A stretch of 64,000 nt of DNA from NCBI GenBank assembly GCA_026770705.1, contig JANJGN010000034.1, positions 13,082,001 through 13,146,000 on the forward strand, given 5' to 3'. The notes below the pieces were generated by a model. The model saw only the letters and a list, made by a program, of their open reading frames with translations. It was not told the origin of the DNA and did no database searches. The first letter of the stretch is position 1. Every line of letters starts with the position of its first letter. Below, piece by piece: positions 6,362 to 59,030 of this stretch. This DNA is from Isurus oxyrinchus (taxonomy: Eukaryota). A program made the position numbers and the translations under genes.

Positions 6362-6478
6362 TTAACTTTGCATGTACTTGACATCGGCATACACAGTCGG
6401 TTCCTCCTTCTCTCCGTGTGCAGCAGTGTGCGCCAGTACGTTAAGATCGAGAGCGGCATAAACGATCCCTTGTTCGTC
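6362..6478 (-). CDS. Gene A terminal exon with ITIM (IVYAAL) and ITSM (TVYADV)
   Basis: NAGNAG acceptor ctctag|cag|; DEQGIVYAALDLNVLAHTAAHGEKEEPTVYADVKYMQS*. Confidence 0.85.
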   Translation of the reverse strand, partial: DEQGIVYAALDLNVLAHTAAHGEKEEPTVYADVKYMQS

Positions 6479-24400: not shown

Positions 24401-24618
24401 AACTGTGCTCTTTTCTGCCGATGCTGCCAGACCTGCTGAGTTTTTCCAGGTATTTCTGTTTCTGTTTTTGTTTTGCATTTTACCCTCTTTGGAGCAAGAG
24501 GGAAGCGGGAACGTTTCTTGAAAAATGCATCAAATGCAACATTCATATAGCAAATGTGAACCTTACCAGACAGGAGAAGAGCAATGCACGCAGTAGAAAT
24601 CCACGCCAGCTGAGTCAT
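6362..24618 (-). CDS. Gene A: nectin/PVR-like V-C-C Ig receptor with ITIM+ITSM tail (inhibitory), 8 coding exons, about 400 aa
   Basis: join(complement) 24567-24618, 16887-17225, 15178-15471, 14056-14173, 12127-12275, 10586-10690, 9627-9655, 6362-6478 = 1203 nt. All introns are GT-AG with compatible phases (1,1,1,2,1,1,0) and the frame is open to TAA. Nectin/PVR hallmarks are YPPEVTITGYDGNW and a third Ig domain split by a phase-2 intron. Confidence 0.88.
6605..7275 (+). mobile_element. L2/CR1-clade LINE 3' end with (TGAA)n tail (shark HER1-like)
   Basis: MEYSPLAWM.AAPTTLKKLD; tail ggcaataaatgctgg...cccacatcccgtgaatgaatgaa. Further copies at about 11275-11800, 17658-18500, 19845-20170, 33960-34285, 37100-37752(-), 50780-51005, 63255-63690. 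Confidence 0.82.
8236..9603. repeat. Minisatellite, 32-bp unit gagttagtgcaaacactgcatttaacatRccc with 23-bp deletion variants
   Basis: Direct tandem array of roughly 40-50 units with no spacers. Confidence 0.95.
9627..9655 (-). CDS. Gene A exon 7, 29-bp cytoplasmic exon (ERCVNTSQTQ)
   Basis: Pyrimidine tract + gcatag| acceptor and CAG|gtatgt donor; supplies the required phase 1->0 change. Confidence 0.72.
10025..10370 (+). mobile_element. tRNA-derived SINE (shark HE1-like)
   Basis: B-box-like ggtttgaatcc and a LINE-shared 3' tail; related copies at about 20780-21110(-), 27118-27470, 33545-33915, 35950-36270(-). Confidence 0.75.
10586..10690 (-). CDS. Gene A exon 6, transmembrane (uncharged core)
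   Basis: GKPEFLYMIKIVAPVVGVVLIVLTVALIWRKRRTQ; ccgtag| acceptor, CAAG|gtaatg donor. Confidence 0.88.
12127..12275 (-). CDS. Gene A exon 5, third Ig domain second half
   Basis: LPEGL...NGTWICEAANSIGTGKG; ccccag| acceptor, AAAG|gtaggt donor. Confidence 0.9.
14056..14173 (-). CDS. Gene A exon 4, third Ig domain first half
   Basis: YPPEVTITGYDGNW...LNCEAKANPPATNYTWSR; ctgtag| acceptor, CG|gtaaat phase-2 donor. Confidence 0.92.
14847..15109. mobile_element. About 260-bp TIR element with hammerhead-like cores in both TIRs (copy at 42848-43110)
   Basis: tgtcCTGATGAGtgcaaggtGAAAagctTCaac at 15064-15096 and an inverted copy at 14856-14892. Confidence 0.7.
15178..15471 (-). CDS. Gene A exon 3, second Ig (C-type) domain
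   Basis: ccaag|CA acceptor, T|gtaagt donor; VANCTS.YGNPAAEITW...DGQTVTCIISHP resembles nectin D2. Confidence 0.92.
16887..17225 (-). CDS. Gene A exon 2, IgV domain
   Basis: ctgcag|CT acceptor and TTAG|gtgtgt donor; LPC...W...DQGMYTC IgV motifs; LFPQG in the FG loop. Confidence 0.93.
17658..18500 (+). mobile_element. LINE fragment at the inner end of the left arm
   Basis: Same junction as 37100-37752(-) in the right arm, but more diverged than the arms themselves. Confidence 0.82.
21288..24475 (+). mobile_element. Penelope-like element with an inverted 3' end (pLTR) copy at its 5' side
   Basis: 21742-24475 encodes RT+GIY-YIG with stops and frameshifts; 21288-21741 is the reverse complement of about 24055-24475. 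Confidence 0.92.
24366..24404 (+). ncRNA. Minimal type I hammerhead ribozyme-like motif in the Penelope 3' end
   Basis: agtt-CUGUUGA-a-gggtc/gactc-GAAA-cg-UC-aact; copies at 999-1037(-), 21389-21427(-), 28026-28064(-), 41667-41705(+), 46472-46510(-). Confidence 0.65.
24567..24618 (-). CDS. Gene A exon 1, signal peptide MTQLAWISTACIALLLS
   Basis: ATG, hydrophobic leader, phase-1 donor TCTG|gtaagg; clearly similar to the gene B leader. Confidence 0.8.
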
Positions 24619-31183: not shown

Positions 31184-31232
31184 ATGGCATTAATGGTTTG
31201 GATGTCGATGGCATATGTTGCACTTCTGTCTG
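31184..31232 (+). CDS. Gene B exon 1, signal peptide MALMVWMSMAYVALLS
   Basis: gaaATGG start context, hydrophobic leader, consensus donor TCTG|gtgagt (phase 1). Confidence 0.8.
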
Positions 31233-37200: not shown

Positions 37201-40200
37201 GTGCTGTCGAAGGAGCCTTGGTGAGTTGCTGCAGTGCACCTTGTAGATGGTACACACTGCTGCTACTGTGCGTCGGTGGTGTAGGGAGTGAATGTTTGTG
37301 GATGGGGTGCCAATCAAGTAGGCTGCTTTGTCCTGGACGGTGTCAAGCTTCTTGAGTGTTGTGGGAGCTGCACTCACCAAGGCAAGTGGGGAGTATTCCA
37401 TCACACTCCTGACTTGCACCTTGTAGATGGTGGACAGACATTGGGGAGTCAGGAGGTGAGTTACTTGTAGCAGGATTCCTAGCCTCTGACCAGGCCTTGT
37501 AGCCACAGTATTTATATGGCTGGTCCAGTTCAGTTCCTGACCAATGGTAACCCCCAGGATGTTGATAGTGGGGGATTGAGTGCTGGTAATGCCACTGAAC
37601 ATCAAGGGGAGATCGCTGGATTCCCTCTTGTTGGAGATGGTCATTGTCTGGCACTTGTGTGGCATAAATGTTACTTGTCACTTGTCAGCCCAAGCCTGGA
37701 TATTGTCCAGGTCTTGCTGCATTTGGACATGGTTGGCTTCAGTATCTGAGGAGTCTTACGTAAACGCCAAAAATATTAATGAAAGCGAAATCGCCCAAGG
37801 AAAAATGAGTTCTTTATTTAGCAGATGAAAAGCAACATCGGAACGGGGGGAGGCCATTCAGCCCCTCGATCATGCGGCGCCATTCAGTTGCTCTGCTTGA
37901 CATTCAGTACTGCTGGTGCCAACGCGGCTGAATATCGGGCCGAGCGGAGAATGGGCGAGCCACGGTATATCGCACGTTTAACTCGAGCGCCAGGGACCAG
38001 ATTTCCCCCCCACCCCCGGGCGGAGCCTTGTGGGCAGGCTGTCGGACAGGAGTAGCTGCACTTTCTTACTCCTCACACATGCCTGTTGAGGATTTAATGT
38101 TCCTTGGGGGCCTCTGATTCGGATTGAGGAGAAATCAGCTTCTAATGTGTTTCCTAACTCCGCCAATTATTGTTGTTCCTGCAGCTACAACCAGTAACCA
38201 CGTTTCAGCTGTGACCCTTACCGCTCTTGTTGGGACTGAGGCACTGCTTCCATGCCGGATATCACTAAACAACTCAAATTTGACACAGATCCAATGGAAA
38301 AAGGGCACTGAGGATAAATCCTTCGTAGTGTATAATCCTAAATTCGGGATATCATTCAGAGATGAAAACTACTCCAGTCGGGTCGTTTTCAGAAACCATT
38401 CACTACTGGACGGATCAATTCTATTGAAGGCTCTGGAGATGGAGGATCAGGGAATGTATACGTGCATATACACGCTATTCCCTCAGGGAGTAGTTGAGAA
38501 ACCAATGAAACTAACGATTTTAGGTATGTATTCTACATGGAGCATTGTTCACGTGAAGATTCATCTGTGGGTTAACGTGATGTTCATGCAGAGAGGGGGA
38601 GGGACTGAATTTTGGGTTGTCCATCCGGGTGTAAACTTAATACCCCTGCAATTATCATCAAAACTGTTGTGTAATTCTAACACTTTAACCTAGTCACATT
38701 CTAGCTCCGATTCATTATTTTATCATAGAGCTATTACTGAGATATTTAGTGTTTGTTTAGCAGTTGCGAGTGAAGCTTTTATTTATGGGAAGGTTGGGAG
38801 TGTCAGACACAAACGAGTAAAGTTTATCATATTCGTCTTCTCCCATTATTGATAGCCACATTCTGCAAAGATATCAGAGCCATTGACGACTCTCAGCAAT
38901 CAATCTGTACCAATTAATCTCTAACAGGTACAGACATGAGGCAAGAGAAATCCCCATCCCCAGCGCTGGAGAACTTTGGGAAGCAGATCTACACCGCAAG
39001 CATGTTGCAGTGATCCCGCGTCACTTCACACACTCTGTCAGATACAGTACCCCTCCCTGTATTCTTCACCCCACTGCAGCTCTTTGACGCTCTCTCCCAC
39101 TTCCTCGCCGTCCACAATCGATCCCCCATCAGTCGCTTTCATGGTCGATTCATGGATCCACCCCTCTGAGTCCTGGTCTGACCTGCAGGTCACAGGCATT
39201 TGTTTCACTGTCCTGGGTTTCAGTGCCACCTCTTACCCTCCAGCATGGTTCCAACACTCTTCCTTCAATATTCTCCCTCCACCTGGACCCCTCCCTCTGG
39301 ATTCTTACCTTCTCTTGATCTTTTCATTGAGAACTGTCGGCACGACATTAGTCGTCTCAATTTCTCTGCTCCTCTCACCCATTCTAACCTGTCTCTCTCT
39401 GAACTTACTGCACTCCATTCTCTCAGGTCCAACCCTGACATTGTCATCAAACCCGCTGACAAGGGTGTTGCTGTTGTTGTCTGGCGCACTGACCTCTACC
39501 TCGCGGAGGCTGAGTGGCAACTCGCAGACACTTCCTCCTACCTCTCCCTGGACCATGACCCCACCACTGAACATCAAGCCATTGTTTCCAGGACTGTCAC
39601 TGACCTCATCTCCTCTGGGGATCTCCCTCCCACAGCTTCCAACCTGATAGTCGCCCAACCTCGGACGGACCGCTTCTACCTCCTACCCAAAATCCACAAA
39701 CAGAACTGCCCCGGTAGACCGATCATGTCAGCTTGCTCCTGCCCCACAGAACTCATTTCTCGTTATCTTGACTCCCTTCTCTCTCCCCTTGTCCAGTCCC
39801 TTCCCACCTACATCCGTGATTCCTCTGACACCTTACATCACATCAACAATTTCCAGTTCCCTGGCCCCAACCGCTTCCTCTTCACCATGGACGTCCAATC
39901 CCTCTACACCTCCATCCCCCACCAGGATGGTCTGAGGGCCCTTAGCTTCTTCCTCAAACAGAGGCCCGAACAATCCCCATCCACCACTACTCTCCTCCAT
40001 CTGGCTGAACTTGTTCTCACGTTGAACAATTTCTCCTTCAACTCCTCTCACTTCCTCCAAATAAAAGGTGTGGCTATGGGTACCCGCATGGGCCCCAGCT
40101 ATGCCTGTCTCTTTATGGGGTATGTGGAACATTCCTTGTTGCAGTCCTACTCCGACCCCCTTCCACAACTTTTTCTCCGGTACATCGATGATTACTTCAG

Positions 40201-43200
40201 TGCCGCTTCATGCTCTCGTCGGGACTTGGAAAAATTTATTAATTTTGCTTCCAATCTCCACCCCTCCATCATTTTCACGTGGTCCATCTCTGACACTTCC
40301 CTTCCCTTCCTTGACATCTCTGTCTCAATCTCTGGTGATAGACTGTCCACCAATATCCATTACAAACCCACCGACTCCCACAGCTACCTCGACTACAGCT
40401 CCTCACACCCCGCTTCCTGTAAGGACTCCATCCCATTCTCTCAGTTCCTTCGCCTCCGTCGCATCTGTTCCGATGATGCTACCTTCAAAAACAGTTCTTC
40501 TGACATATCCTCCTTCTTCCTTAACCGAGGTTTTCCACCCACGGTCATTGACAGGGCCCTCAACCGTGTCCGGCCCATCTCCCGCGCATCTGCCCTCACG
40601 CCTTCTCCTCCCTCCCAGAAACATGATAGGGTCCCCCTTGTCCTCACTTATCACCCCACCAGCCTCCGCATTCAAAGGATCATCCTCCGCCATTTCCGCC
40701 AACTCCAGCATGATGCCACCACCAAACACATCTTCCCTTCACCCCCCTTATCGGCATTCCGTAGGGATCGCTCCCTCCGGTACACCCTGGTCCACTCCTC
40801 CATCACCCCCTACTCCTCAACCCCCTCCTATGGCACCACCCCATGCCCACGCAAAAGATTTAACACCTGCCCCTTCACTTCCTCTCTCCTCACCGCCCAA
40901 GGGCCCAAACATTCCTTTCAAGTGAAGCAGCATTTCACTTGCATTTCCCCCAACTTAGTCTACTGCATTCGTTGCTCCCAATGTGGTCTCCTCTACATTG
41001 GAGAGACCAAACGTAAACTGGGCAACTGCTTTGCAGAACACCTGCGCTCTGTCCGCAAGAATGACCCAAACCTCCCTGTCGCTTGCCATTTTAACACTCC
41101 ACCCTGCTCTCTTGCCCACATGTCTGTCCTTGGCTTGCTGCATTGTTCCAGTGAAGCCCAACGCAAACTGGAGGAACAACACCTCATCTTCCGACTAGGC
41201 ACCTTACAGCCTTCCGGACTGAATATTGAATTCAACAACTTTAGGTCGTGAGCTCCCTCCCCCATCCCCACCCCCTTTCTGTTTCCCCCTTTCTTTTTTT
41301 TCCAATAAATTATATAGATTTTTCTTTTCCCACCTATTTCCATTATTTTTAAATATTTTAAAATCTTTTATGCTCACCCCACCCCACTAGAGCTATACCT
41401 TGAGTGCCCTACCATCCATTCTTAATTAGCACATTCGTTTAGATAATATCACCAACTTTAACTTTAACACCTATGTGTTCTATTGTACCATTGTCATTGA
41501 CATCTTTTGATGATCTGCTTCTATCACTGCTTGTTTGTCCATACAACCACACCCCCAACCCCCCACCCCCCAACCCCCCCACAACCTCTCTCTCTCTATC
41601 TCTCCGCCCCCCACACACACACCTTAAACCAGCTTATATTTCAACTTTTTCTTGGACTCGAACTCAAGTTCTGTCGATGTGTCATGAGGACTTGAAACCT
41701 CAACTCTTTTCTTCTCCGCCAGACCTGCTGAGTTTTTCCAGGTAATTCTGTTTTTGTTTTGGAGTTCCAGCATCCGCAGTTTTTTTGTTTATAACGCTTC
41801 CCTCAGCCGCACACTAGGCCCCCCAAATTTCGCCTCCCAGTGGCACAGGCCAGTCCTTGTGGCACTTGCTGATTGGGTGATCAAGTGCCAATGATACAGT
41901 TTCGATCATGGCCATTTTTCTCAGTCCTGAAGCTGGAACATCGCCAGCCTTTTATTTGCCATCGCCGCAAAGACACCCCCTTCCCCTCATAAAGATGGGG
42001 ACAGGGCCCAGGGCCAAGCCAGTTTCTCACACGTTGCTGCATTTCTACCCACCTACCCCACCCTCTCAAAACCCAGTGCTCCGCCCATTTCCTTTGGTCC
42101 TTCCGCACCCAGCTGCCCCCACAACACCCGTCGCCAGTGCCAGTCCCATCCAAGACCCATCCCTTTGGCACCATATGTAGAGCATAAGCACAAGTTGGAT
42201 CTGACTGAGAGCAATAACGTGGCTGAACTGAGACCAATCGCTTTACTTCTTATATTCCTGCTCATTCCTTCCATTCTCCCATTGCCTTTGTCCCTCTCTC
42301 CTCACTTTCTTACCTCGGTCCCCTCTTTAACCGTAACGTCATCCATGATGCAGTTGGGCCATTTGATGGAGACATGTAAATATTGACAGGATCTGGTTTC
42401 TGTATTTTTTTTGCTCCGGATTAATTGCAAGCTCCTGACGTGTTTGAAACGGACGTTGAGTTAATTTCTTGTTTATCTCCCCAAGCAATTCCCAGTAACA
42501 GGGCGATCCCGGTTCCCGCACGGACTGCTGATTCAGAAGTGCCAGTGGCAAATTGTACTTCAACCTACGGGAACCCAGCAGCCGAGATCACGTGGATTTC
42601 CGGTTCCCATGGAAACTATACAACAACCCTGATTGAAAACAACAACGGGACAACAACTGTTATCAGCCTGTACAAGATGGCACCTAATGACGATGATGAT
42701 GGTCAAACAGTGACGTGTATTATCTCCCACCCAGCATCAAACAGCACAGATACTTACACGATAAAATTATTGATCCTCTGTAAGTTCCGTATACAAAGAC
42801 AATTAATTCCAATAGTCGCTTGGTAGGACAGAAGTTGAGTATTGCAGAAAAAAGAGCACGGTGAAGCTTTTCACCTTGCACTCATCAGGACACTTCACTA
42901 TAATACCGATATAAGGAGAAAACAACGATTTATACTGCATGTGAAGAGAGTGCTGGTTGGTTGGCAAGCGGACTCTGATTGGGCTCTGTGTAATAATATA
43001 TGTAGCTTCCTGTACACACAAACACACACACATTGTTTTCCCTTCATTTCAGTATTCTTGCAAAGTGTCCTGATGAGTGGAAGACAAAAAGCTTCCACGT
43101 CTCTTTTTTCATCAATACAAAAATAATGTAATCCAATTCAAAGTGCGCTGCCGTTGAGTAACGAGACAGCAATCTCCTCCCCTAACTAGAGAAGTGTTAA

Positions 43201-46200
43201 ACTTCCCTCACTGGCTGAATTGACATTTTCTGGATATCCGCGATTCCAGCATTGCTGGGCCGGTTCAATGTGACCGGTTGTGGTTGATTCGCCAGCCGCA
43301 CATATTAAATAATTCAAAAGCGATCATTTTCTTCGGGAGGTTAGAGAGCTTGTATCATTTTCTGGGCGTAAAGACTTGTTTGCAACAATTCGGGGTCACT
43401 TCAACTTTGGATGGTTAGGCTGAGTGGGGTGTTTTCCAGCGTGGAAGTTGCTCTATCAATGCAGTCGGAAGTTGCAGTTCAGAATGAACCTCATGGCCTG
43501 AATCATGGGTTATCGGAGCAAGCAGCGACTTTCAAGCGACATGTTAAACTGTGGTGGTTTTCCTTTGAGGTTATCGTTGCTTTACACAGGACATGTGATT
43601 CACTTAACATGAAAGGCAAAGACTGTTTTAAATATGTGGACGGGCCAGAGCTACTGACCTACCATTTCCTGCCAATCTGGCCTGTTGTACAAATGCACCA
43701 ATGTGGATTCTCTACTGTGTTGGATGTACTGACCACATGATCACAATAATTTCCTCTGTAGATCCACCAGAAGTGACCATAACAGGTTATGATGGCAACT
43801 GGAGTGAAAACACTAGGGATGTTACTCTCAATTGCGAGGCCAAAGCCAATCCCCCAGCAACAAATTACACTTGGTCACGGTAAATATGCGCTTCATTTAT
43901 TAAGAATTGCATTGTGTATATTTTCAAAACTGTGTAGATCATGGATCGCTCAGATCTTTTCATACAGTTTGTGATCTGGTTGTTGAACTGGAAATAGGCC
44001 CCTCCGCACGGGTTTTGTTTACATGTCTCTGCTTTAAGGAAAACATTCGTGAAAAAGCTGTGGTCATGCGAAGGTGTTTAACAAGAACCTTCACTGACTG
44101 ACTCTGTACCTCAGCGGCCTTCAGAAAGGCCAAACCGAGAATCTGTGACCCGTGGGCCGGTAGATACAGATTGGCTGAGCAGCAAGAGGCCATTTGCTGA
44201 ACTAGTGTGGTAATAAGTTTTGCATACTTGAGATGCAGAAAGGCCAACTGATCGCAAATGAACACCAACACACTTCCAATTTTATGCCTCGCTATTTGGG
44301 TTCGCGGAAAAAATATATTGTGTTAAAAACCTGGAGAGCCATTTGAAATGTGTCTCCTACAAAATACAACTGAAACCCAAAATAACCACTTGTATCTTGG
44401 GGTAATTTTTTCCTTGGGTCAGTTAAGGACATGGTGGGTAGAGTGAACATCGTGAGTGACCAGACACAGCATTAAGAATGAATCTGCCTCTGCTTGCCAA
44501 GCTAGCAGAGATGGAGAAGGGGAAAATGTAGTGTGTGTAAGATCATCATGTAGGCAATATTTATGAATGAGATGATGGGGGTAGTGGGGGGGCGATGGGA
44601 TTGAATGGCTTTAATATGGGGGTAAATATTGACCACAATACAGGAGTGTGTGTAGAATGGGCCAAGCAGCCCAGGTGGAAAAGAGCTGATAAACCCAGCC
44701 CTGGGGAAAGGCCCCAAATGCAGGAGGACTTCAACAAACAGCGATGAGTGGTACTGTTGTATGATGTTCTGTACCAGAAATCTTTCAGATTATTTACATT
44801 ATGGGCGACTTTGGGAAATGTCAAAATATAGGATTGGTCGCCCATGATAAGTCGTTTGTTATCACCATCTCCTGAGTGGGCTATTTGACATTGTCTAGTT
44901 TCTTCACTGGTTTTCTTCAATCCTCCACCATCCACATCTCAGTGCTATCCACCCATTCAGTTCTTCATCTTCCTCTTCTCTTTTTACCTTCAATTCCTCC
45001 TTCAGTTGAGGACACGTCTTTGTTTCCGATCTCTGTACTTGCTCATCATTCTGTCTCCGCCTGTACTTGGCAACCCTTTTGATTCCTGAACTTCTGCTCT
45101 TGACCTAAGCCACCCTTTGACCTTCCTGTCCATCCAGCTGATTCTGAGCATCCTCCGCCAAACCCACATTTCAAAATCCCTAATCCCCCTCTTATCCTCC
45201 TTCCACAGAGTCCAAATCTCACATGCAATGGATGCAACACTCTACGCTGTTGACCGTACCAGATATTTTCTTTTCCAGCTATATGCTGATGCTTTTGGAT
45301 TTACAGGGGCTACTTAAATCACTGTTCATGCCTCTTGCTGTAGCTAATCTACCTGGATTGCATTCTTGGGTATAACTTTGGTGTTTATCATCAAGTCAAT
45401 GTACTTGAAATTGTCCCTCTATCTCGGTACTTCCAATCTTGACTTTCCCATTGCTATTTAGAGCCAGAAAATTGGTCTTCAACTCATTTATCTCATGTAT
45501 ATCATTCATGCCCTACTATACACCATGAGTAACATCCCATACCGTCCAGTGATACAATCTGGTGGAGCGTATCTGCTCTTTGGAGGCCAGAGCTAATATT
45601 CATCACCTAGATTTAGTCACCAAGGCATTTCTTACATGTGCATCGTTGGCTCTCCCCAGGTTACCAGAAGGACTGGAGGCCAGAAATGCAAGTGTGTTCA
45701 TAAAGAAAGTGAGCAATTTAATGAATGGGACCTGGATCTGTGAAGCTGCCAACTCAATTGGGACAGGGAAAGGCAAACTGGAAATAATCTTAAAAGACTC
45801 CCCTAAAGGTAGGTACAAGTTAATAGAGCGATAGAAAGGGCCAAATTCCCTTTCATTTTGTTAACGAAAGCGTAAGTGCTGGAATTTAATAAACGGCCAC
45901 ACATGAAATTAGATGATTGGGATGATGAGTTCACTTTGAGATCTGTGGAAATCATGGAGGGTGCTATAAAAACGCAACTTCTTTATTTCAACGAGCGATA
46001 GATCCTCAGACCCCAAATGCCGGTCATGTTTTCAGGACCCACCATTTGTCCATCTTTATCCTGAATCTTGTCAAGTTCCTGTTGCTTTATAAACTCTTGA
46101 AAACCAGTTGCCACTGTGAAGATTTTTTAAAAATTCTTTCACGGTTTGTGGGAATCGTTGGTTGGGCCAGCATTTATTTCCCGCCTCTCGTCACCCTTGA

Positions 46201-49200
46201 GAAGGTGGTGGTGAGCTGCCTTCTTGAGCCGCTGCAGCCCCTGTGGTGTAGATACACCCACAGTGCTGTTAGGGAGGGTGTTCCAAGACAGGTGATTCAC
46301 TTAACATGAAAGGCAAAGACTGTTTTAAATATGTGGATGGGCCAGAGGTACTAACCTGCCATTTCCTGCCACTCTGGCCTGTTGTACAAAAGCACCAATG
46401 TGGATTCTCTACAAAAGCAGAATTACCTGGAAAAACTCAGCAGGTCTGGCAGCATCGGCAGAGAAGAACAAATTTGACGTTTCGATTCCTCATGACCCTT
46501 CAACAGAACTAAATAAAAATAGGAGATGCCTGAAATACAAGCTGGTTAAAGGGGGGGGGGGGGGGGGGGTGGGGGGGGGGGCAAGAAAAGTGGGGGTGGG
46601 GGTGGTTGTAGGGACAAGCAAGCAGTGATTGGAGCAGATAATCAAAAGATATCACAGACAAAAGAACAAAGAGGTGTTGAAGTTGGTGATATTATCTAAA
46701 AGAATGTGCTAATTAAGAATGGATGGCAGGACATGCAAGGTACAGATAGCTCTAGTGGGGGTGGGGTGAAATAAGACTAAAAGGGCATAAAAGGTATAGA
46801 TTTAAAAATAATGGAAATAGGTGGGAAAAGAAAAATCTATATAAATTATAGGAAAAACAGAAGGGAGGGGGGAGAAACGGAAAGGGGGTGGGGATGGAGG
46901 AGGGAGTTCAAGATCTAAAGTTGTTGAACTCAATATTCAGTCCTGGAGGCTGTTCAGTGCCTAGTTCGAAGATGTCAATTTTGGAAGGTGCTGTCTAAGG
47001 ATCCTTGGTGAGTTGCTGCAGTGCATCCTGTAGTTGGTACACTCACTGCTGTAACTGTGCATCGGTGGTGGAGGGAATGAGTGTTTGTGAATGGGGTGCC
47101 AATCAAGAAGTCTGCTTTGTCCAGGCTGGTGTCGAGCTCCTAAGTGTTGTGGGAGCTGCACTCAACCAGGCAAGCGGGGAGCATTCCATGACACTCCTGC
47201 ATTGTGCCTTGTAGATGAAGTATATTAATTATATATGAAAGTACTTTTCAAATAGCCTCTTTCATTTCCATAGGGCTAGAAAGGCAGATTGTTCTGCTCA
47301 TTTGCCTGCAATTACAGGATTGCTTGGGCTCCCCGAGTACAGGGAATTTGGTTCATTTTGAGGACATATCTGAAGGATTTTAATGAATTCCCTCACATGA
47401 GACAATGGAATACCATGAGCTATTTCCTGTTGATCATCCTGGCCTAATTCTAAGGGCCATTGAAAAAGTAATTAATCAGCACATGAATCGGGATGTAATT
47501 GCATTTCCCTTGAGTTTTCCCTTCAACTGTTTCCTCATTAAAGCTTTTTTCTTATTCTTCCATGGGATGTGGGCATCGCTGGCTGGGCCAGCATTGATTT
47601 CCCAGCCCTAATTGCCCTTGAGAAGGTGATGCAAACAACGTCCCCCACCAAACCTGGTAATTGAAGAGGCGCGAGGGAGAGGTGCAATAATTACTGTCCA
47701 CAATCAGTGTACATGACTGACCACCGAGCATATACCGTCAGCTCCAATTCCCGCTTTCAATGACATTGTCCTTATTTCTTGCAAAGCTATTTCCGTAAAT
47801 GATACTGCTGTATTTGTCACAGTTTCCCCGCCCCCCATTGTGTCCGAGTATTGCCCTGCACATTACAATCATCGGCTTCATTTTCCAGGCCTGCAGGATC
47901 GCCTCCCATCTTCAACCAGCCCCAAAATCTCCGTCTTCAGCCAAACAGTTGCCCCAGTTCACAGAATCACAGAATTTTGACAGCGCAGTAGGAGCCCATT
48001 TGGCCCATCGAGTCTGCACTGACTCCCCCTCTACAGTTCGCACCGGTCGCCTCAGGCCAACAACAGCGGTGCAGATCCTCACCCTTCAATGTTAACCGGA
48101 GTGTCAGACCTCACGTCTTCTGCATCAGGAGGATTTCTCAGTCCCAGCATTGAAATGCCGCCGCCATTTTGTTTATTACTGCCCCATATCCTGCCCCAGC
48201 CCCTCCCCCAAAACCATAGTCCACCATTGGTGGCAGAGCCTTCAGTCAACTCCAGCCAAGCTGTCTTGCAATACACCATTACACATTCCTCAGAAGCTCC
48301 TTCCTTTCCAATTCTGTTTCGGCCTCTCTCCTCATCCCCACATGCAGCTTGCGAAGGCTCTTAGCTACTTGCCACATGAAATGCATGAAAGTGGTATCCC
48401 CCACATTAAAAAAGTGTCCCTATTGCCCTCCCCAAGCCCAACTAACAAGAGATTGTTCCTGCTTTTCCTTCGTTTCATCCCCAAGGCTCTTTCCTTCCAT
48501 CTTATTCTTCCTTCCTTGCTTCCATCCCATTTCTTGCAGCGATGAATGAGTGAAGGCCTACGAGGCAGCAGCTGGAAGTGATTGGGCTCAGGACCTTGGT
48601 TTCACAAGCGTTTGCTGGTTGCCCAAGGTTGTGATGGTTTTACCGCGTCCACCACCGCCCAATATGTCAGGCCTAACTCAATTGATCCCATCACTGCATC
48701 TGATACAGGAAACAACAACTGCCCACCCCGTTGGATAAAAGAAATTAATAACAGAAGCAAGGTTATTGACAGGAAACTCAGAAAGATGATGTATTTTTTT
48801 ATTACTAACTTGTACCATTGTTTTACTTCCTGTTCGTTTCTATTTGATGATTTCGCAGATCATGGGAATGGAAAGCTAATCAACCCATGTGTGACATTGA
48901 GAGTAGTGGTGTTTGCTCTTTCCACGTTTCTCATTGTTCTATTCATCAGGCGAAAATGCAGACCAGCAGGTAAATCATCAGAAAATGAAAGGTGAAACCA
49001 AATACCTAAACGACTACAGATATTTCAACTCGGCGCTGGTGTTTAATAGTTCCACCATAATATCTTTCAACTTTCTTACGTTACTCTGGTCTTACCTTCC
49101 CACCAGCTTGCTCTCTCATTCAATTCAATTTCCGAGGGTCGGCTATTTGCTAATATTCTACCACAAGCCTGCAAACTATGTAGTTTACACTTCCTCCCAG

Positions 49201-52200
49201 CCTGCTCCCTATATAGACTCTCCTCTCTTCTCCCAGCGTCTTCATCTCCATTGCTCCTTTACTTATGATGCATCCTCCCATGCTGCTGCTTCTGATGGGT
49301 ATGTCTTCCTTCTTCCTCAGCTGAGGATCCCCACTACCACCTGACTAATTGACAGGGCCCCTAACTATGACCGCCCCTTTTCTCTCTCGTCAACTCACCC
49401 CCTTCCCCTATCAGCACCCCCTGCCCCCCTACACCAAAGCTGCTATAGGATTCTACTTGCCCTTATCTTTCACTCCACTATCTGCTACAATCCAACAGGT
49501 CATTGTCTGCCATTTCTGCCACCCCCAGTAGGATACCACCACCAAGTGCATCTTCCCCTCCCCTTCCCTTTGAGCATTTTGAAAGGGACCAATCCCTTCG
49601 TGACACCCCAGCTCACTAATCAATGACTTCCCCCACTTCCCGCCACACCAAATCCAGAAGATGTACCACTTGCCTTGTTACCTCCCCACATCACCCCACC
49701 CCCCCAACCCTTTCCCAAATTCCAGGGCTGCAAGTGCTTTTTCAGGGGAAACAGTGATTTATTTACACCTTTTTCAATTTGACATATTGCCTTTTTGCTG
49801 CTTACAATGCAGTCTCCTCTAAATCGGGCGACCAAAAGCACATTGACGATTGCTTTGTACACCACGTCCATCCAGTCTGCAACTGTGTTCCCCAATTCTT
49901 GTCATTTTAATTCTCCGCTCCACTCCCACTTTGACCTCTCTGTCCTCAGCCTGCTGCAGTGTTGTAATAAGGCCAATGGAAGTCAGAGGGGAAGCAATAT
50001 ATTTTTCGATTTACACCCGCCTGGACTTAATTTTGAGTTCAGTAATTTCAGATCATAACCTCTGCCCCTCTTTCTTGGTCAGCAGCTGTTGGAGATCTTT
50101 CTGCTGTTACCATTTACACCTCCTCTACAGCCTTCTTTTGTCTCTTTGCATGCCCCACTGCCAACCACTTTTACTTATTGTCAACGTTCCTTGTGTCATT
50201 TAATCACATAAGTCGCTTTAAGCTTGTTGCTTCTGTCACCTTTTCCAGCCCTGACAGACGGGGCAACAGTGGAAATGTTTGATCTGTTTCTGCCTCCACT
50301 GGAGCTGCCTGGCCTGCTGAGAATTTCCAGCAATCTCTGCCTTTATTTCAGATTTCCAGCAACTGCAGTATCTTGCTTTTGCACCCTCAATCAGAATTGT
50401 TGAGCTGGTTTACACCAGCGCATTCCTGCCTTTCATCAGGTGAAACAGCAGATGCGAATGTGCAATAACACAAGTCTCCTAATTTATATTTACAGCAGAA
50501 ACCTCTGTCAACGTTCCCGTTCAAAGAAAGACAATTGAGCAGGTAATTTAAAGCTACATTAATAGTTAGTAATTTCAGCTCTTTACTAAACATTTCACTT
50601 CTACTCTTGACAGCCTCAACTGTTTGCACCCAACCGGAACCACATGTTAGCAGTTGGTGTTTGAGACTGTAGCATTTAGCACAAATGGTTCACGTCTTAG
50701 TGACATCCCAGACAGTTACCTATGGAATATGTCAGTGTTCTTTACCACTAAAAATATTGTTCCAATGGCTTTGCATCTTTCCTCCAAGCCACTCGCCATC
50801 CTGACTTGGAAATATATCAGCCGTTCCTTCACTGTCGCTGGGTCAAATCCTGGAACTCCCTCCCTAACAGCACTGTGGGTGTACCTACACCACAGGGACT
50901 GCAGCGGCTCAAGAATGCAGCTCACCACCAGCTTCTCAAGGGCGGCTAGTGATGGGCAATAAATGCTGGGCCCAGCCAGCGAAGCCCATATTCCCATGAA
51001 TGAAAAGTAAGAAAAAATAGCAGAAGAAAAATGACACAGCTTTTCATTGATATAAGACCATAAGACCATAAGACATAGGAGCAGAAATTAGGCCATTCGG
51101 CCCATTGAGTCTGCTCCGCCATTCAATCATTGCTGATAAGTTTCTCAATCCCATTCTCCGGCCTTTGATATGAAAGCAGAAAATGCTGGAAAAATTCAGA
51201 ATGGACTCGAAACGTTGACTCTGCCCCTCTCTCCACAGATGCTGCCAGACCTGCTGAACTTTTCCAGCATTTTCTGTTTCTCTTTCAGATTCCCAGCATC
51301 CGCAGTGTTCAGCTGTTCGTTGACTGTCACCGGGACACACAGATTTGAGATAATTGGCAAAAAACCAGTGAGATGTTAAGGTTTCTTTTTCCTCCATGGA
51401 CCAGGCTGTTATGATCAGAAAGGGATGCTGAATAGGCTGTGGAAACAGATTCAATAGTAAATTTCAGAAGAAAATTGGGCAAATGTTTCAAAAGGAAACT
51501 CAGCAAGGTTATGCAGAAAGAGTAAGGGAGTGGGACTAATTAGGGAGAACTCTTTCTAAAGGCTGGCACAGGCAGAACAGGCTGAGGAACAAGCTTCGGT
51601 TCAGTGTGAATTCATGATTCTGTGAATGATTCTCATTTACTACCCAGAGAGTTGTTGATGTTTTTGTCCCCCTGTTCATTGACTGTGCTGTACCTGCCTG
51701 TCCCCATGTCGTCTTAGCTCTTCTGTTGATGCGAATGCCTGAATGTTCCTGGATTGAACCGTATTCTCTTTATTTTCCAGGATTTGTCAGATGTGAACGC
51801 CACTTACATGGTAGGGTGGAAGACATATTTATTTCAAGTGAGACTTTATTTAGGCAAATGAACATTATTGAGTTACTAACGAATCACACTTGTGGCAACT
51901 TCCCACAGGGCCTGAACTTAGCAGAAGAATCGGTCTACAGTGAATTACAGAGGTATAATTTATTCTGCTTCATTAACTGTGAGCCAATCCAAAGACAACA
52001 TGAATATATCTGACTGTCGTCTATCCATCTCTGCATCTATCACTTATCTATCTATCTATCCATCTATCTATCTATCTGTCTCTCTGCCTGTCTGTCTGTC
52101 TATCTATCTATCTGTTTGTCTATCTATCTGTTTATCTGCCTATCTGTCCAACTGTCTGCCTGTCACTCTGTCTGCCCCTCTGTGTGTCTCTCTGTGTGTC

Positions 52201-52587
52201 TCTCTGTCTGTCTGTCATGCCTGTCTGTCATGTCCATCTGTCTGCCTGTCTCTCTGTCTGTCTGCCTTTCATGTCTGTCTGCCATGCCTGTCTGCCTTCC
52301 TGTCTATCATGTCTGTTTGTTTGTCTGTCTATCTATTACGTATGTCTGTTTGTCTTTCTATCTATCATGTCTGTCTATCGAGCATGACTGTCCATCTCTT
52401 GGACTGCCTGTCTCCCACTCTCTTTCTCTCTCTCCCCCTCTGCCTGTGAAAGATTCTTTCAGCCCCCTTCCACTTCCAGCCATGATCTTAGAAGTAACTA
52501 CTGTGCTGTTCCCATTTACTTTGCACAGATTGTTTTTCAGGCAATGACTCGAGTAACATTTGGTTTAAAATCTCTTTTTTCAGATAA
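31184..52587 (+). CDS. Gene B: nectin/PVR-like V-C-C Ig receptor with TM arginine and intrinsic ITAM (activating), 10 coding exons, about 394 aa
   Basis: join 31184-31232, 38185-38523, 42486-42779, 43762-43879, 45660-45808, 48859-48969, 50496-50542, 51781-51810, 51909-51952, 52584-52587 = 1185 nt. All introns are GT-AG, the phases are compatible and the frame ends ...YSELQR*. Confidence 0.83.
34560..35190 (-). mobile_element. CR1-like LINE 3' fragment
   Basis: VRPHLEYCEQFW.PYLRKDILALEAVQRRFTRL. Confidence 0.88.
38185..38523 (+). CDS. Gene B exon 2, IgV domain
   Basis: 339 bp like the gene A V exon; 11 amino-acid differences; donor TTAG|gtatgt. Confidence 0.93.
39258..41790 (+). mobile_element. 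Young Penelope-like element with an uninterrupted RT-GIY-YIG ORF, in intron 2 of gene B only
   Basis: ORF 39200-41251; the empty site in the other arm is at about 16135-16150. Confidence 0.94.
42486..42779 (+). CDS. Gene B exon 3, second Ig domain
   Basis: One amino-acid difference (N/S) from gene A; intact splice sites. Confidence 0.92.
43762..43879 (+). CDS. Gene B exon 4, third Ig domain first half
   Basis: Protein identical to gene A exon 4. Confidence 0.92.
45660..45808 (+). CDS. Gene B exon 5, third Ig domain second half
   Basis: Protein identical to gene A exon 5. Confidence 0.9.
46413..46975 (-). mobile_element. Penelope-like 3' end / pLTR fragment
   Basis: GLNIEFNNFRS C-terminus plus the same tail as the other copies. 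Confidence 0.85.
48859..48969 (+). CDS. Gene B exon 6, transmembrane exon containing Arg
   Basis: ttcgcag| acceptor, GCAG|gtaaat donor, phase 1-1; DHGNGKLINPCVTLRVVVFALSTFLIVLFIRRKCRPA. Confidence 0.82.
49180..50380 (+). mobile_element. Old degenerate Penelope-like relic
   Basis: Decayed matches (accaccaagtgcatcttcccctc; GLNFEFSNFRS; gatttccagcaactgcagta tail). Confidence 0.7.
50496..50542 (+). CDS. Gene B exon 7, cytoplasmic (AETSVNVPVQRKTIEQ)
   Basis: NAGNAG acceptor tacag|cag|, donor CAG|gtaatt, phase 1->0; shares E-x-x-VN / TGTCAAC with gene A exon 7. Confidence 0.68.
51781..51810 (+). CDS. Gene B exon 8, first half of ITAM (DLSDVNATYM)
   Basis: Strong acceptor ctctttattttccag| and donor ATG|gtaggg; read in phase 0. 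Confidence 0.78.
51909..51952 (+). CDS. Gene B exon 9, second half of ITAM (GLNLAEESVYSELQR)
   Basis: cttcccacag| acceptor after a 98-bp intron; donor AG|gtataa. Confidence 0.78.
52020..52440. repeat. Degenerate (TCTA)/(TCTG) microsatellite
   Basis: Low-complexity tetranucleotide array in the last intron of gene B. Confidence 0.9.
52584..52587 (+). CDS. Gene B putative terminal exon (A TAA stop)
   Basis: ctcttttttcag|ATAA completes the AG|A Arg codon, then stop. Confidence 0.55.
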
Positions 52588-54367
52588 GCTGCTTGCAAGA
52601 ATGAACACAGCTCAGCCAGACCCCAGACAGTGTTCAACTCTGAACTTTGTCCTGATCTTTCAACATTATTATACAAACCCTCTTACAGAAATTCTGTGCT
52701 TAATGACGTAGACATAGGTAATTGTCATTCCTAGATCTCTGCTTATTTAGTGGTGCAGTAAATTTCAATGCCTTTAATCAAGATTGACATCCACCCAATG
52801 GGATGTCTCTACTGCTTGCAAATGAATGGAACTCTTTCTATTACCCGCCTTTCTCAATATCAGACCATTGCCATATAATGTATAACAGCTTTTTAAAAAA
52901 AATGAGGCACAGGGACCAATTCCACAATTGAATTGTGCATAGCTCTCACACCTGGGCTTGGACAGGGTGCAGAGGGTTAGGGGGGCAAGTGGGGGGAGGG
53001 GGGGCGTTGAGGAGTGGGGGAGGGGGTAGCTATTTTGTGAGGAAAGTTTGGACAAGCTAGGCCTGTATCCATTGGAGTTTAGAAGAATGAGAGGTGATCT
53101 TATTGAAACATATTATATCCTGAGGAGACTTGACAGGGTAGATGCTGAGAGAACATTTCCCCTTTTGGGAGCCTCTAGATCTAGTGGACACAGTTTAATA
53201 AAAGAGAGTCTCCCATTTTAGATGGAGATGGGAAGATTTTTTATTCTCTCTGAGAGCTGTGAATCTTTGGAGCTGTCTTCCCCAGACAGCATTGGAGGCT
53301 GGGTCAATGAATGTTCTTAAGGCAGGAGTAGATTCTTGATTAACAAGGGGGTCAAAGGTTATCAGGGGTAGGCAGAATGTGGAGTTGAGGTTCCAGTGGG
53401 ATCAGCCATGATCTCACTGAATAGCAGAGTAGGCTCTAGGGGCTGAATGGTCTACGCCTGCTCCTAATTCATATATAGAAACAGAAAGTGCTGGAAAAGC
53501 ACAGCAGGTCTGGCAGCATCAGCATAGTGCTATTGTCACTGTGTTGGGGTTCCAGAGATACAGGGTTCCAATCTCTGACGAAAACCATTGCTGAATGTTA
53601 TGAAAACCCAGCTGATGTGATGCCCTTTAGGTAAGGAAATCTGATATCCTTACCTTGCCTAGCCTGCAGGTTGACTCTGAATGAGGGCAAATAAATATTG
53701 GCCTTGCTAGTGGTGCCCACTTCCCATGAATGAATTTTTAAAAATGTAGCCAGTATTCTGGAATTCCCAAACAGCCCACCTCCGACAACCCCCACCCCCA
53801 ACCCCCGCACCCCCCCACGCCCCACCTCTGCCCCCCCACCACCCCCCCCCCCCCCACCCCCCCCCCCCCCCCCCACCACCCCCCCCCAACCCCCACCCCA
53901 TCATTCTAGGTCACAATCACTTGCTTCCCTGTCACCAATGACCAAAGTAGTCTCTTGCCCACTTGTAGCTGCATTTCCTGTTGAACTGCTTTTCCCGCCC
54001 CCAAAAGGGAGCATATATTATCGACATTGGTCAGAACCATTCCCATTGGAAGGGTGAAGAGCGCTTTCATCCCAGCACTAGGGACAGTTTGATCAATTTG
54101 CGGACAGTCAGCTATGAGTCCTTCCTTATACTTAGGTTCTAATTGGATCAGCCATTGTTCACCCAGGTCCGATCAATGTGTAATCTTGGCTGGAGCAAAT
54201 TGTTGTCATAGAGAGAGAGCGAGGGAGAGAGAACACAGAACCAGCGAGCTTGGTGTAGTGGAAATGACACAACTGTTTTTCAATAGGAAAGAGGGGGAGG
54301 AATGAAGGTCCTGTTCACAGATAGAAAGCAAAAGACACACAAAGAGTGGCAGAAAATGTTAGAGCAT

Positions 54368-54443
54368 GGGGTGGGTAGGGGTTGGAAGGGGTGGGTAGGG
54401 GTTGGAAGGGGTGGGTAGGGGTTGGAAGGGGTGGGTAGGTTGG
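54368..54443 (+). repeat. 20-bp G-rich tandem repeat (ggggtgggtaggggttggaa, about 4 copies)
   Basis: Direct repeats with G-runs; G-quadruplex potential. Confidence 0.85.
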
Positions 54444-56647
54444 GGAATTGGGTGACAGTGGGGGTTCAAATTGAACTAAAATTCAGTGAATCAATCTGGA
54501 AAATTGAAAGCTTATCCTCAGTAATGGTGACCATCATTGATAGTGGTAAAAGAAAAACCCATCTGGCTCACTATTGTCCTTTAGGGAAGGAAATCTGCCT
54601 CCTTACCTGGTCTGGCCTACATGTGGCTCCACACCCACAGCAATGTGGCCGGGCAAGCTGTTCAGTTCAAAGGCAAATTAGAGATGGACAGCAAATGCTG
54701 GCCTTGCCATGTCCCATGAAAAAAGAAATAAAGCAATTGGATAGATAATTGATGGGCCAAATTACAGAGTTTATGGAGTAAGGCCAGGGCGAGGGAAATA
54801 GATTAGACTGCTTTGCAAATGAGCTGTCAGAGGTACAAGGGGCTGTAGGACCTCACCCGCTGCCGATTCCTTCCGTGTTTCCACGAGTCCATGCTTTAGA
54901 AGTATCTGAGAGAGCCGGCTTTGTAACTGTCCCAAACGATCCAGCAGGATGAACGTCATATCTGCACGCCAATATGGACACACGCTTAGGAACGAGAGCA
55001 GAACACAGGTACAACATTCTGTGATGGAAATGGGAATGACCTAACAAACAATGATTAAATACTAACACTGGTGACACATGTATATACTTTAACATATTTC
55101 TTTCTGAATATTTCAACATAAGACAAAATAAATGATTTCATATATTAGTTGGAATTAATTCTGGTGGACAACATTTAATAGACCAACTTGGGAACATAAA
55201 CTAGAGCATTAATGCATTATTACAATGCATAACAATAATAATACCGTCAATAATACCTCATTTCCCTTAGTGGCGGTGTCACTAACGGAGTGGGGGAGGG
55301 GGGGGGTGTGTGGGGGGGAGATGTAAAATAGTTGAACCAAGATTAGATGGAGGTTGAGGGACAATGTTTCCACCCAGAGCTTGCTGGGGGGACTTAAACT
55401 CACTTGCTGAAATCATGGTGGAAGCAAAATCCCTAATCACATTTAAAACGGGCTTGGATTTTCACAAGGGTACAGGCAAAGTGCAAAAAAGTGGGGCTAG
55501 GTTGGATAGCAGCTCCTCAGCCAGCACAGACATAATGGGCCAAATGACCTCCCTCCGTGCTATATCACTGCACGACCCATTATATGCAGAAGGCTTCACC
55601 CCTGATGAATTGTATGAGTGAACTTGCACCTCTGGAACGTGGTGGAAAACCAAGTCCGGAGACTTGAGCTGAAAGCCACCTACCTGTTGCAATAGGGACC
55701 TTTATTCAACACATGTCCTCAGACTTTAATATGTTAACCATTTTCACCCAGAAGGATAACGTTTAATTGCACCACTGAATGTAAACTCTATAAATCCAGT
55801 AACATTGCTCTAAGCTTCAAATTACAAACAACAGTGGGGTAAATTATTTGGGTTAGGAATAATGGTTTTATTTAAGTCCAAATTGTGTTGCAATGCAGGG
55901 TAACATCTAAAAGTATTTGAATGCCTTGAAAGTTAGCGTTCAGCTTTATCAGCACTCCACTGACGAATATATCAAAAAGTGGAATAAATCTACTTCTGTT
56001 TGAGAATGCCATACACAATGCCTTCTGAACCAGCGTTATCTTCACTGGAACATGTTCTCTTTGTGGGATGTCCTATGCTGAGACATGTTCGGGGAGGAAT
56101 ACACGATCTCACGATGTCACTGCTAATGCAAACCCAGGTTTTACCATCGCAAATACTTTATCATCAGGCACTAAACATTCCTTTCCAATGTTTTCTCTGC
56201 TTACAGAAGGGTACAGGTATGTCTGCACATAAGAACAGCATGATTATCTCGTTTGACACATGGGATTAAAACACAACTCTGCAAACTGAAAAAAAAAATA
56301 GGGACTTGAGATCAGAACCACAGAGATGCCCCAAAGTGCCTCTCAGTCAATGATGTATTTTGATGTGAGGTAACTGATGCAATGTTCGAAACGTGGAATC
56401 CAGCTTGTACACACCAAAGACATTGCAAACACATTGGAGGTGGTTCAGAGGAGTTTTACTAGGCTGATATCTGGAATGAGTGGGTTGTCTTATGAGGAAA
56501 GGGTGGACAGACTACGCTTGTTCAGAGGAGTGAGGGGTGATTTGACTGAAGATTCTGAACGGTCTTGACAGGGTGGACGTGGAAATGATGTTTCCTCTCG
56601 TGGGTGAGTCCAGAACTACGGGGTACTGTTTTAAAATTAGGGGTGGC

Positions 56648-58860: not shown

Positions 58861-59030
58861 NNNNNNNNNNNNNNNNNNNNNNNNNNNNNNNNNNNNNNNN
58901 NNNNNNNNNNNNNNNNNNNNNNNNNNNNNNNNNNNNNNNNNNNNNNNNNNNNNNNNNNNNNNNNNNNNNNNNNNNNNNNNNNNNNNNNNNNNNNNNNNNN
59001 NNNNNNNNNNNNNNNNNNNNNNNNNNNNNN
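58861..59030. other. Assembly gap (170 N) within a ccat/ctat microsatellite
   Basis: Run of N. Confidence 1.

Follow-up and report, generated by a model that had tools for sequence, protein, structure and literature searches.

Whether a receptor of the nectin/PVR family can carry an activating signalling motif in its own tail is the question raised by a locus of the shark Isurus oxyrinchus. The locus lies within a stretch of 64,000 nucleotides (nt) of contig JANJGN010000034.1 (assembly GCA_026770705.1, positions 13,082,001 to 13,146,000 of the forward strand), which is referred to here as the window and from the first letter of which all positions are counted. Two genes, A and B, are found in it. 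The favoured reading, given a probability of about 0.8, is that gene B, with ten exons, is transcribed and intact and encodes a type-I membrane receptor some 394 amino acids (aa) long. It would be the activating half of a head-to-head paired receptor, with a nectin/PVR ectodomain and an activation motif of the immunoreceptor tyrosine-based kind (ITAM) in cis at its C-terminus.

A split ITAM in the tail of gene B

The ITAM is divided between two micro-exons, cytoplasmic exons 2 and 3 of gene B (Table 1). Both have canonical borders, each acceptor being a good polypyrimidine/AG site and each donor a GT: ttattttccag/GATTTGTCAGATGTGAACGCCACTTACATG/gtagggtg for the first and cttcccacag/GGCCTG...TTACAGAG/gtataatt for the second. 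Spliced in phase 0 they read DLSDVNATYM/GLNLAEESVYSELQ(R), or N-A-T-YMGL-x7-YSEL, and the intron falls within the first YxxL at an exact codon boundary (TACATG/gt...ag/GGCCTG). In FcRgamma and DAP12 the intron likewise lies exactly after Y+1. The string N-A-T-Y-M-G-L-NLAEESV-Y-S-E-L fits D/E/N-xx-YxxL/I, a spacer of 6-8 residues and YxxL/I, the classical consensus being D/E/N-xx-YxxL/I-x7-YxxL/I (PMC4536121). A phase-0 intron within the first YxxL is a hallmark of classical ITAMs, in adaptors and in CEACAMs (PMC4536121, PMC2832619). The motif is cytoplasmic, downstream of the transmembrane (TM) segment and in the frame that is used, as seen from the phase chain, the spliced contigs and the orthologous proteins. 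Strings of the form Yxx[LI]-x6-8-Yxx[LI] occur nine times by chance, unspliced, in the six-frame translation of the window, so that the pattern alone is weak evidence. The ITAM is taken as real because of the spliced contigs and because the tail matches exon for exon in other sharks.

Four runs (X1 to X4), found with the exon for the variable (V) immunoglobulin (Ig) domain of gene B, were compared over 48700-54699. The unique intron bins at 49100-49699 are empty in all four, and the runs therefore behave as RNA rather than as genomic DNA. In X3 and in X4 a single contig, of 1038 and 695 nt respectively and of depth 13.9, has one piece on 48857-48966 and another from 52582, the terminal pieces being 52582-52925 in X3 and 52582-52982 in X4. 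The splice chain was reconstructed from these pieces and from the bin depths. Between the TM and terminal pieces both contigs have 122 letters of their own. Allowing for the placement of CAG at the TM border and of AG at 52582-83 on either side, this is an insert of 121 nt, or 47+30+44. The depths of X3 in bins 50500-50699, 51700-51899 and 51900-52099 (2.78, 2.22 and 2.99) equal 13.9 multiplied by 40, 32 and 43, respectively, over 200, and the depths of the TM-exon bins also fit the contig depth. No sequence differences inside the micro-exons are listed for the X3 and X4 contigs. There is no depth on gene B exons in X1 and X2, which is not evidence of silence.

The ten-exon model of gene B was assessed exon by exon, not as one joined protein. 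All of its borders are AG/GT and its phases (1,1,1,2,1,1,0,0,2) chain correctly. The coding sequence is in frame and, with its stop, comes to 1185 nt (394 codons); the protein is as long as P0167, the 413-aa model of Cetorhinus, would be without its 19 read-through residues. The tail of 45 aa comes from four small exons, and the TM segment is uncharged to weakly charged. The terminal exon opens with the base that finishes an Arg codon and continues directly with TAA, so that the protein ends ...YSELQR, with the ITAM at its extreme C-terminus. Reading past the donor at 51952 (51953-52013) would add YNLFCFINCEPIQRQHEYI and then a stop, which is how the Cetorhinus RefSeq model ends; the window contigs, unlike this read-through, splice to 52584. 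The region 52582-54364 is covered almost continuously by contigs with few mismatches from runs X1 to X4, and may be a 3' untranslated region (3'UTR) of gene B of nearly 2 kb or another transcript.

Table 1. Features of genes A and B in the window
Feature	Positions	Strand	Description and evidence
Gene B leader exon	31184-31232	+	MALMVWMSMAYVALLS + 1 nt; phase-1 donor g/gtgagt; tblastn with P0002 and P0167 leaders, 16/17 identical to Carcharodon P0002
Gene B IgV exon, nectin/PVR-type	38185-38523	+	Pfam V-set 5.8e-13; PDB nectin-1 D1 4.3e-17
Gene B second Ig exon, CD80-like C2-set	42486-42779	+	Pfam C2-set_2 3.7e-17; PDB PVR D2 3.2e-12
Gene B third Ig domain, first half	43762-43879	+	Phase 2 donor; Pfam Ig_3; 100% aa identity to gene A copy
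Gene B third Ig domain, second half	45660-45808	+	Sequence, gene A comparison, tblastn
Gene B stalk and TM exon, with RRKCRPA	48859-48969	+	Found only in gene B; tblastn with P0167/P0002; X3 and X4 contig pieces
Gene B cytoplasmic exon 1	50496-50542	+	47 nt; (A)ETSVNVPVQRKTIEQ; sets ITAM phase 0; 15/16 identical to Cetorhinus and Carcharodon; X3/X4 bin depth
Gene B cytoplasmic exon 2	51781-51810	+	30 nt; DLSDVNATYM, first ITAM half; ends after Y+1, phase 0
Gene B cytoplasmic exon 3	51909-51952	+	44 nt; GLNLAEESVYSELQ + AG, second ITAM half
Gene B terminal exon	52584-52982	+	A completes Arg; TAA 52585-52587; remainder 3'UTR
Gene A, inhibitory twin	6365-24618	-	Gene B comparison, tblastn
Gene A leader	~24618	-
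Gene A V exon	17225-16887	-
Gene A second Ig exon	15471-15178	-
Gene A third Ig domain	14173-14056 + 12275-12127	-
Gene A TM exon	~10690-10578	-
Gene A terminal exon	6481-6365	-	IVYAALDL (ITIM), TVYADVKY (ITSM)

The ectodomain is of the V-C-C type (C, constant) seen in nectins and PVR, with Pfam V-set, C2-set_2 and Ig_3 domains and matching PDB structures. The best solved relatives of the V exon are nectin-1 D1 and nectin-3, followed by CD226, PVR, CD96, nectin-2/4 and TIGIT, and the next-best match of the second Ig exon after PVR D2 is nectin-1 D2 (1e-10). Since the V and second Ig exons best match nectin-1/3 and PVR/nectin-1, the scaffold is placed in the nectin/PVR family. In the PDB the V exon matches nectin/PVR, not CEACAM, and it has the canonical Cys pair (LLPC...YTC).

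A preliminary description of this DNA, made from the letters alone, had proposed that phase-0 splicing of the 30-nt and 44-nt exons gives a canonical ITAM, that its intron stands where the ITAMs of FcR-gamma and DAP12 have it and that the motif is borne on a nectin ectodomain. The first proposal is borne out by the splice sites, the contigs and the shark orthologues. The fit of N-x-x-YMGL-x7-YSEL to the published consensus (PMC4536121) upholds the second part of that proposal, that the motif is canonical. The phase-0 split agrees with the reported intron position (PMC4536121, PMC2832619), and the matches of the V exon to nectin-1 D1 (4e-17) and of the second Ig exon to PVR D2 (3e-12) support the type of ectodomain. 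Skipping of exon 50496-50542, named beforehand as the event that would leave the protein without an ITAM, is contradicted by the 47+30+44 nt of the X3 and X4 contigs.

The tail in other sharks

Orthologues were sought with the V exon in a full HMMER search, and through a cluster look-up and two further searches, which returned RefSeq 'nectin-1-like' models from many sharks. The comparison was made on these protein models, which are automatic (RefSeq/Gnomon). The ITAM tail, with the same exon order, is present in orthologues of eight named species from four orders. In Carcharodon carcharias (P0002) the ITAM region is ...DSSDVNATYM GLNLAEQSVYSALQR. The two modules are YMGL...YNEL in Cetorhinus maximus (P0167), YMGL...YSEL in Mustelus asterias (P0186), YMGL...YCEL in Scyliorhinus torazame (P0175), YTSV...YSDL in Stegostoma tigrinum (P0155), YASL...YNEI in Chiloscyllium punctatum (P0164) and YTSL...YNEI in Hemiscyllium ocellatum (P0165). 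The sawshark Pristiophorus japonicus (P0168, P0174) has YMGL...YSEL and the ending QR. In an alignment of five sequences the two tyrosines of the ITAM do not vary, nor do the Leu that follows the first module, the E-Q-x-V-Y or the last Arg. The other four orthologues have both tyrosines too, and the modules are in every case 7 residues apart. Compared exon by exon by tblastn, the tail exons of the window are identical to those of Cetorhinus at 15/16, 10/10 and 13/15 residues. Judged from these sequences, the motif is common to Galeomorphi and Squalomorphi, and the YTSV of Stegostoma indicates that some drift in the first module is tolerated. For Pristis, the one batoid seen, no ITAM form turned up, which does not show that it is absent. 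When the Stegostoma tail was used in a word search it matched only itself; such a search is too insensitive for a region of 54 aa and is uninformative on tail homologues.

Cytoplasmic exon 1 encodes E-x-Y-[VI]-N in seven of the shark orthologues, with a Pro after it in six of them and a Ser in Mustelus. The tyrosine has been lost independently in S. torazame, which has Gln (TETQANVA). The TM segment of the window copy has an Arg near its outer end, in VTLRVVVF. Carcharodon and Cetorhinus have Gly at this position, and all other orthologues have an uncharged residue. Its codon, AGA at 48900-48902, is also polymorphic, with A (Arg) in the X3 contig and G (GGA, Gly) in the X4 contig, within one sample. 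The Arg is therefore outside any conserved mechanism.

Among the Gnomon isoforms of Carcharodon are ones in which the TM exon directly follows the V exon, or the leader alone, giving an ITAM receptor of 207 aa with one Ig domain. The isoform proteins are P0002, P0151, P0153, P0152 and P0156, and one Stegostoma isoform is without the TM exon. The C-domain exons may be alternatively spliced. A third 'nectin-1-like' subfamily of sharks and batoids (P0178, P0179, P0181, P0182, P0183) has tails ITVYATLNLNVL ... ATVYADININ. [quoted passage not shown]

Twin genes with different tails

Genes A (minus strand) and B (plus strand) are head-to-head, with their leaders 6.5 kb apart (~24618 and 31184). The protein identity of their Ig exons is 90% for the V exon and 99%, 100% and 100% for the others, and the DNA arms around them are 93.5%, 98.3% and 92.8% identical. 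Homology ends at 47797 in gene B and 10692 in gene A, which is the acceptor of the gene A TM exon. Past this break gene A has its own TM exon and an ITIM/ITSM exon, and gene B has an unrelated TM exon and the ITAM cassette. Near-identical ectodomains, ITIM+ITSM versus ITAM tails and linked genes are the features of a paired receptor.

The V exons (38187-38522 against 17223-16888) differ at 13 nt, making 11 nonsynonymous codon changes and 1 synonymous one, while in the three C-domain exons only 1 of the 4 differing nt is nonsynonymous. The V domain seems either to be subject to diversifying pressure or to be escaping conversion. Leaders and tails are orthologous across species, with MALMVWMS... 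in the activating form and MT.LAWIS... in the inhibitory form, whereas the ectodomains are more alike within species. From these comparisons, the pattern is that of conversion as in CEACAM1/CEACAM3-type pairs (PMC2832619). Pairing recurs in Stegostoma (P0155/P0163, with ectodomains 98% identical), Cetorhinus (P0167/P0171), Pristiophorus (P0168/P0172) and Hemiscyllium (P0165/P0173).

The preliminary description had also called the ITAM hidden and old, and had seen it as an ITAM exon module attached to the ectodomain. Its age is supported by the tail being shared by Galeomorphi and Squalomorphi. It is hidden only with respect to the open reading frames (ORFs) of the window; the RefSeq models of other sharks already include the tail. 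Attachment is supported only indirectly, by the break of the twin-gene homology at the TM exon, and no sequence homology to adaptor ITAM exons accompanies it.

Signalling, relatives and neighbouring features

If gene B acts through its ITAM, ligand binding by the V domain would cluster the receptor and a Src-family kinase would phosphorylate both ITAM tyrosines. The tandem SH2 domains of Syk/ZAP-70 would then dock, leading to activation in the form of phagocytosis, cytotoxicity or the release of cytokines. With the same or nearly the same ligand, gene A would recruit SHP phosphatases and oppose gene B. The gene B steps are drawn from established ITAM biology, and the cell type and the ligand are likewise putative.

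Several points weigh against this account. Phosphorylation and Syk binding are predictions from the motif. The micro-exon content of the contigs was deduced from exact length and from bin depth and position, not read base by base, and the labelling of the runs as RNA is guesswork. Isoforms without the TM exon or the C domains are among the Gnomon models as well. The window copy does not have the Y-x-N tyrosine kept by most orthologues, having Ser instead (codon TCT at about 50501-50503, in AETSVNVP), and the first module of Stegostoma has Val for Leu/Ile.

Some of these points are shared by an explanation in which the ITAM is a coincidence of annotation or assembly, the micro-exons being minor or non-productive, with a protein that is short-tailed or decays as the main product. 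The nine chance strings in the window, the guessed nature of the runs and the several alternative isoforms would all suit it. It is nevertheless highly improbable, given two contigs from two runs with exactly 121 nt between the TM and terminal exons, a tail kept exon for exon as far as the Squalomorphi, and a coding sequence in frame whose 394 aa equal the Cetorhinus length without the read-through. Signalling mainly via a separate FcRgamma-type adaptor, recruited by the TM Arg and making the ITAM of gene B redundant, is equally hard to credit. What suggests it is the Arg of VTLRVVVF, towards the outer end of the TM segment, yet the residue is Gly or uncharged in the orthologues and varies within one sample, with G at 48900 in the X4 contig. 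Recruitment by this Arg was rejected as the main mechanism.

It is also unlikely that the two YxxL modules are mainly YxxPhi sorting or endocytosis signals, or an inhibitory ITAM, setting surface level or dampening a response rather than activating Syk. YxxL is established as fitting the AP-2 sorting consensus too, the CEACAM papers label such motifs 'endocytic or ITAM-like', and the first module of Stegostoma is a further point in favour. Against it stand the spacing of exactly 7 residues and the invariance of both tyrosines in four orders of sharks, the N/D at position -3 relative to the first Tyr, the twin with its ITIM/ITSM and, in most orthologues, an adjacent Grb2-type YxN. Together the spacing, the invariant tyrosines, the N/D, the twin and the YxN make up the full signature of an activating partner, as in the favoured reading of gene B.

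In meeting the classical ITAM consensus gene B resembles FcRgamma, DAP12, CD3 and CD79. These adaptors are short, have an acidic residue in the TM segment and bear little ligand-binding ectodomain, if any, whereas gene B has its ITAM in cis, three Ig domains and no Asp/Glu in the hydrophobic span of the TM exon. With nectins 1-4 and PVR (CD155) it shares the V-C-C ectodomain, and 'nectin-1-like' is the RefSeq name of its shark orthologues. Its tail differs in having immunoreceptor motifs; the afadin-binding C-terminus (E/A-x-Y-V) is absent from gene B, which ends YSELQR-stop, whereas true shark, frog and teleost nectins from the same search have x-Y-V ends (AVYV, GMYV, EHYV, EQYV). The tail of PVR has an ITIM and is not known to have an ITAM.

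DNAM-1 (CD226), TIGIT and CD96 are similar in being activating and inhibitory Ig receptors of a PVR-like family, and one Carcharodon family member is named 'tactile-like'. The V exon of gene B matches CD226 at 1e-9, against 4e-17 for nectin-1. DNAM-1 differs in its two V-like domains and its lack of an ITAM, and the mammalian partners are not near-identical twins. DNAM-1 signals through a conserved D/E-I-Y-V/M-N Grb2 motif (PMC4647266). This motif resembles the E-x-Y-[VI]-N-x-P of cytoplasmic exon 1 in the shark orthologues, the window copy being without the tyrosine.

The closest architectural match, ahead of the adaptors, is with the CEACAM paired receptors (CEACAM1 versus CEACAM3, the ITAM-type receptors of marsupials and Xenopus, and CEACAM20). 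The CEACAM N domain is IgV-like and is not known to have the canonical disulfide, whereas gene B has a V domain with the canonical Cys pair and a CD80-like C2-set domain. In both systems there are ITIM/ITSM and ITAM genes with near-identical ligand-binding domains homogenised by conversion, and tail exons swapped as a cassette. CEACAM ITAM tails likewise have four small cytoplasmic exons, an upstream Grb2-type YxN exon and a phase-0 split of the first YxxL (PMC2832619, PMC5112662). The likeness is one of tail architecture, not of demonstrated sequence homology between the tails, and the YxN is lost in the window copy.

In mammals the CEACAM genes adjoin PVR/NECTIN2. The shark, CEACAM and DNAM-1 tail cassettes may share a common descent, and the CEACAM literature describes the CEACAM ITAM cassettes as acquired 'from an ITAM-encoding ancestor'. 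A more specific proposal is doubtful: that the shark cassette (an E-x-Y-[VI]-N exon and a phase-0-split ITAM; four exons, phases 1-0-0-2) would be the surviving ancestral activating tail of PVR/nectin-like immunoreceptors, homologous to the CEACAM ITAM cassettes and to the immunoglobulin tail tyrosine (ITT)-like motif of DNAM-1. If so, the activating/inhibitory axis of PVR ligands would, as true paired twins, date to the jawed-vertebrate ancestor.

No account of paired receptors of nectin/PVR-like type that bear an ITAM in cartilaginous fish turned up in the literature searches. The orthologues were already in RefSeq, only as pipeline models named nectin-1-like, nectin-3-like and tactile-like; gene B is a paired immunoreceptor with a cis ITAM on a nectin/PVR scaffold. 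Such pipeline names hide immunoreceptors. Paired activating and inhibitory receptors recur in vertebrate immunity (KIR, LILR, SIRP, CEACAM, NITR), and in mammals the nectin/PVR ligands are read by unrelated-looking partners, DNAM-1 versus TIGIT/CD96. The shark pair has C domains homogenised by conversion and V domains differing almost only by amino-acid changes, an arrangement kept across four orders. As a candidate for an ancient recognition system of the PVR family it can be tested, and it offers a natural experiment on the swapping of tail cassettes at the TM exon and a possible link among the nectin/PVR, CEACAM and DNAM-1 tails.

The intron between the V and second Ig exons of gene B contains an ORF of 683 aa at 39200-41251 (plus strand) with a reverse-transcriptase domain (RVT_1, 1e-7), which interrupts the arm homology of the two genes. 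A copy that is 91% identical is present at about 22009-24323, between the V exon and the leader of gene A. A run of N at 58861-59030 lies outside both genes.

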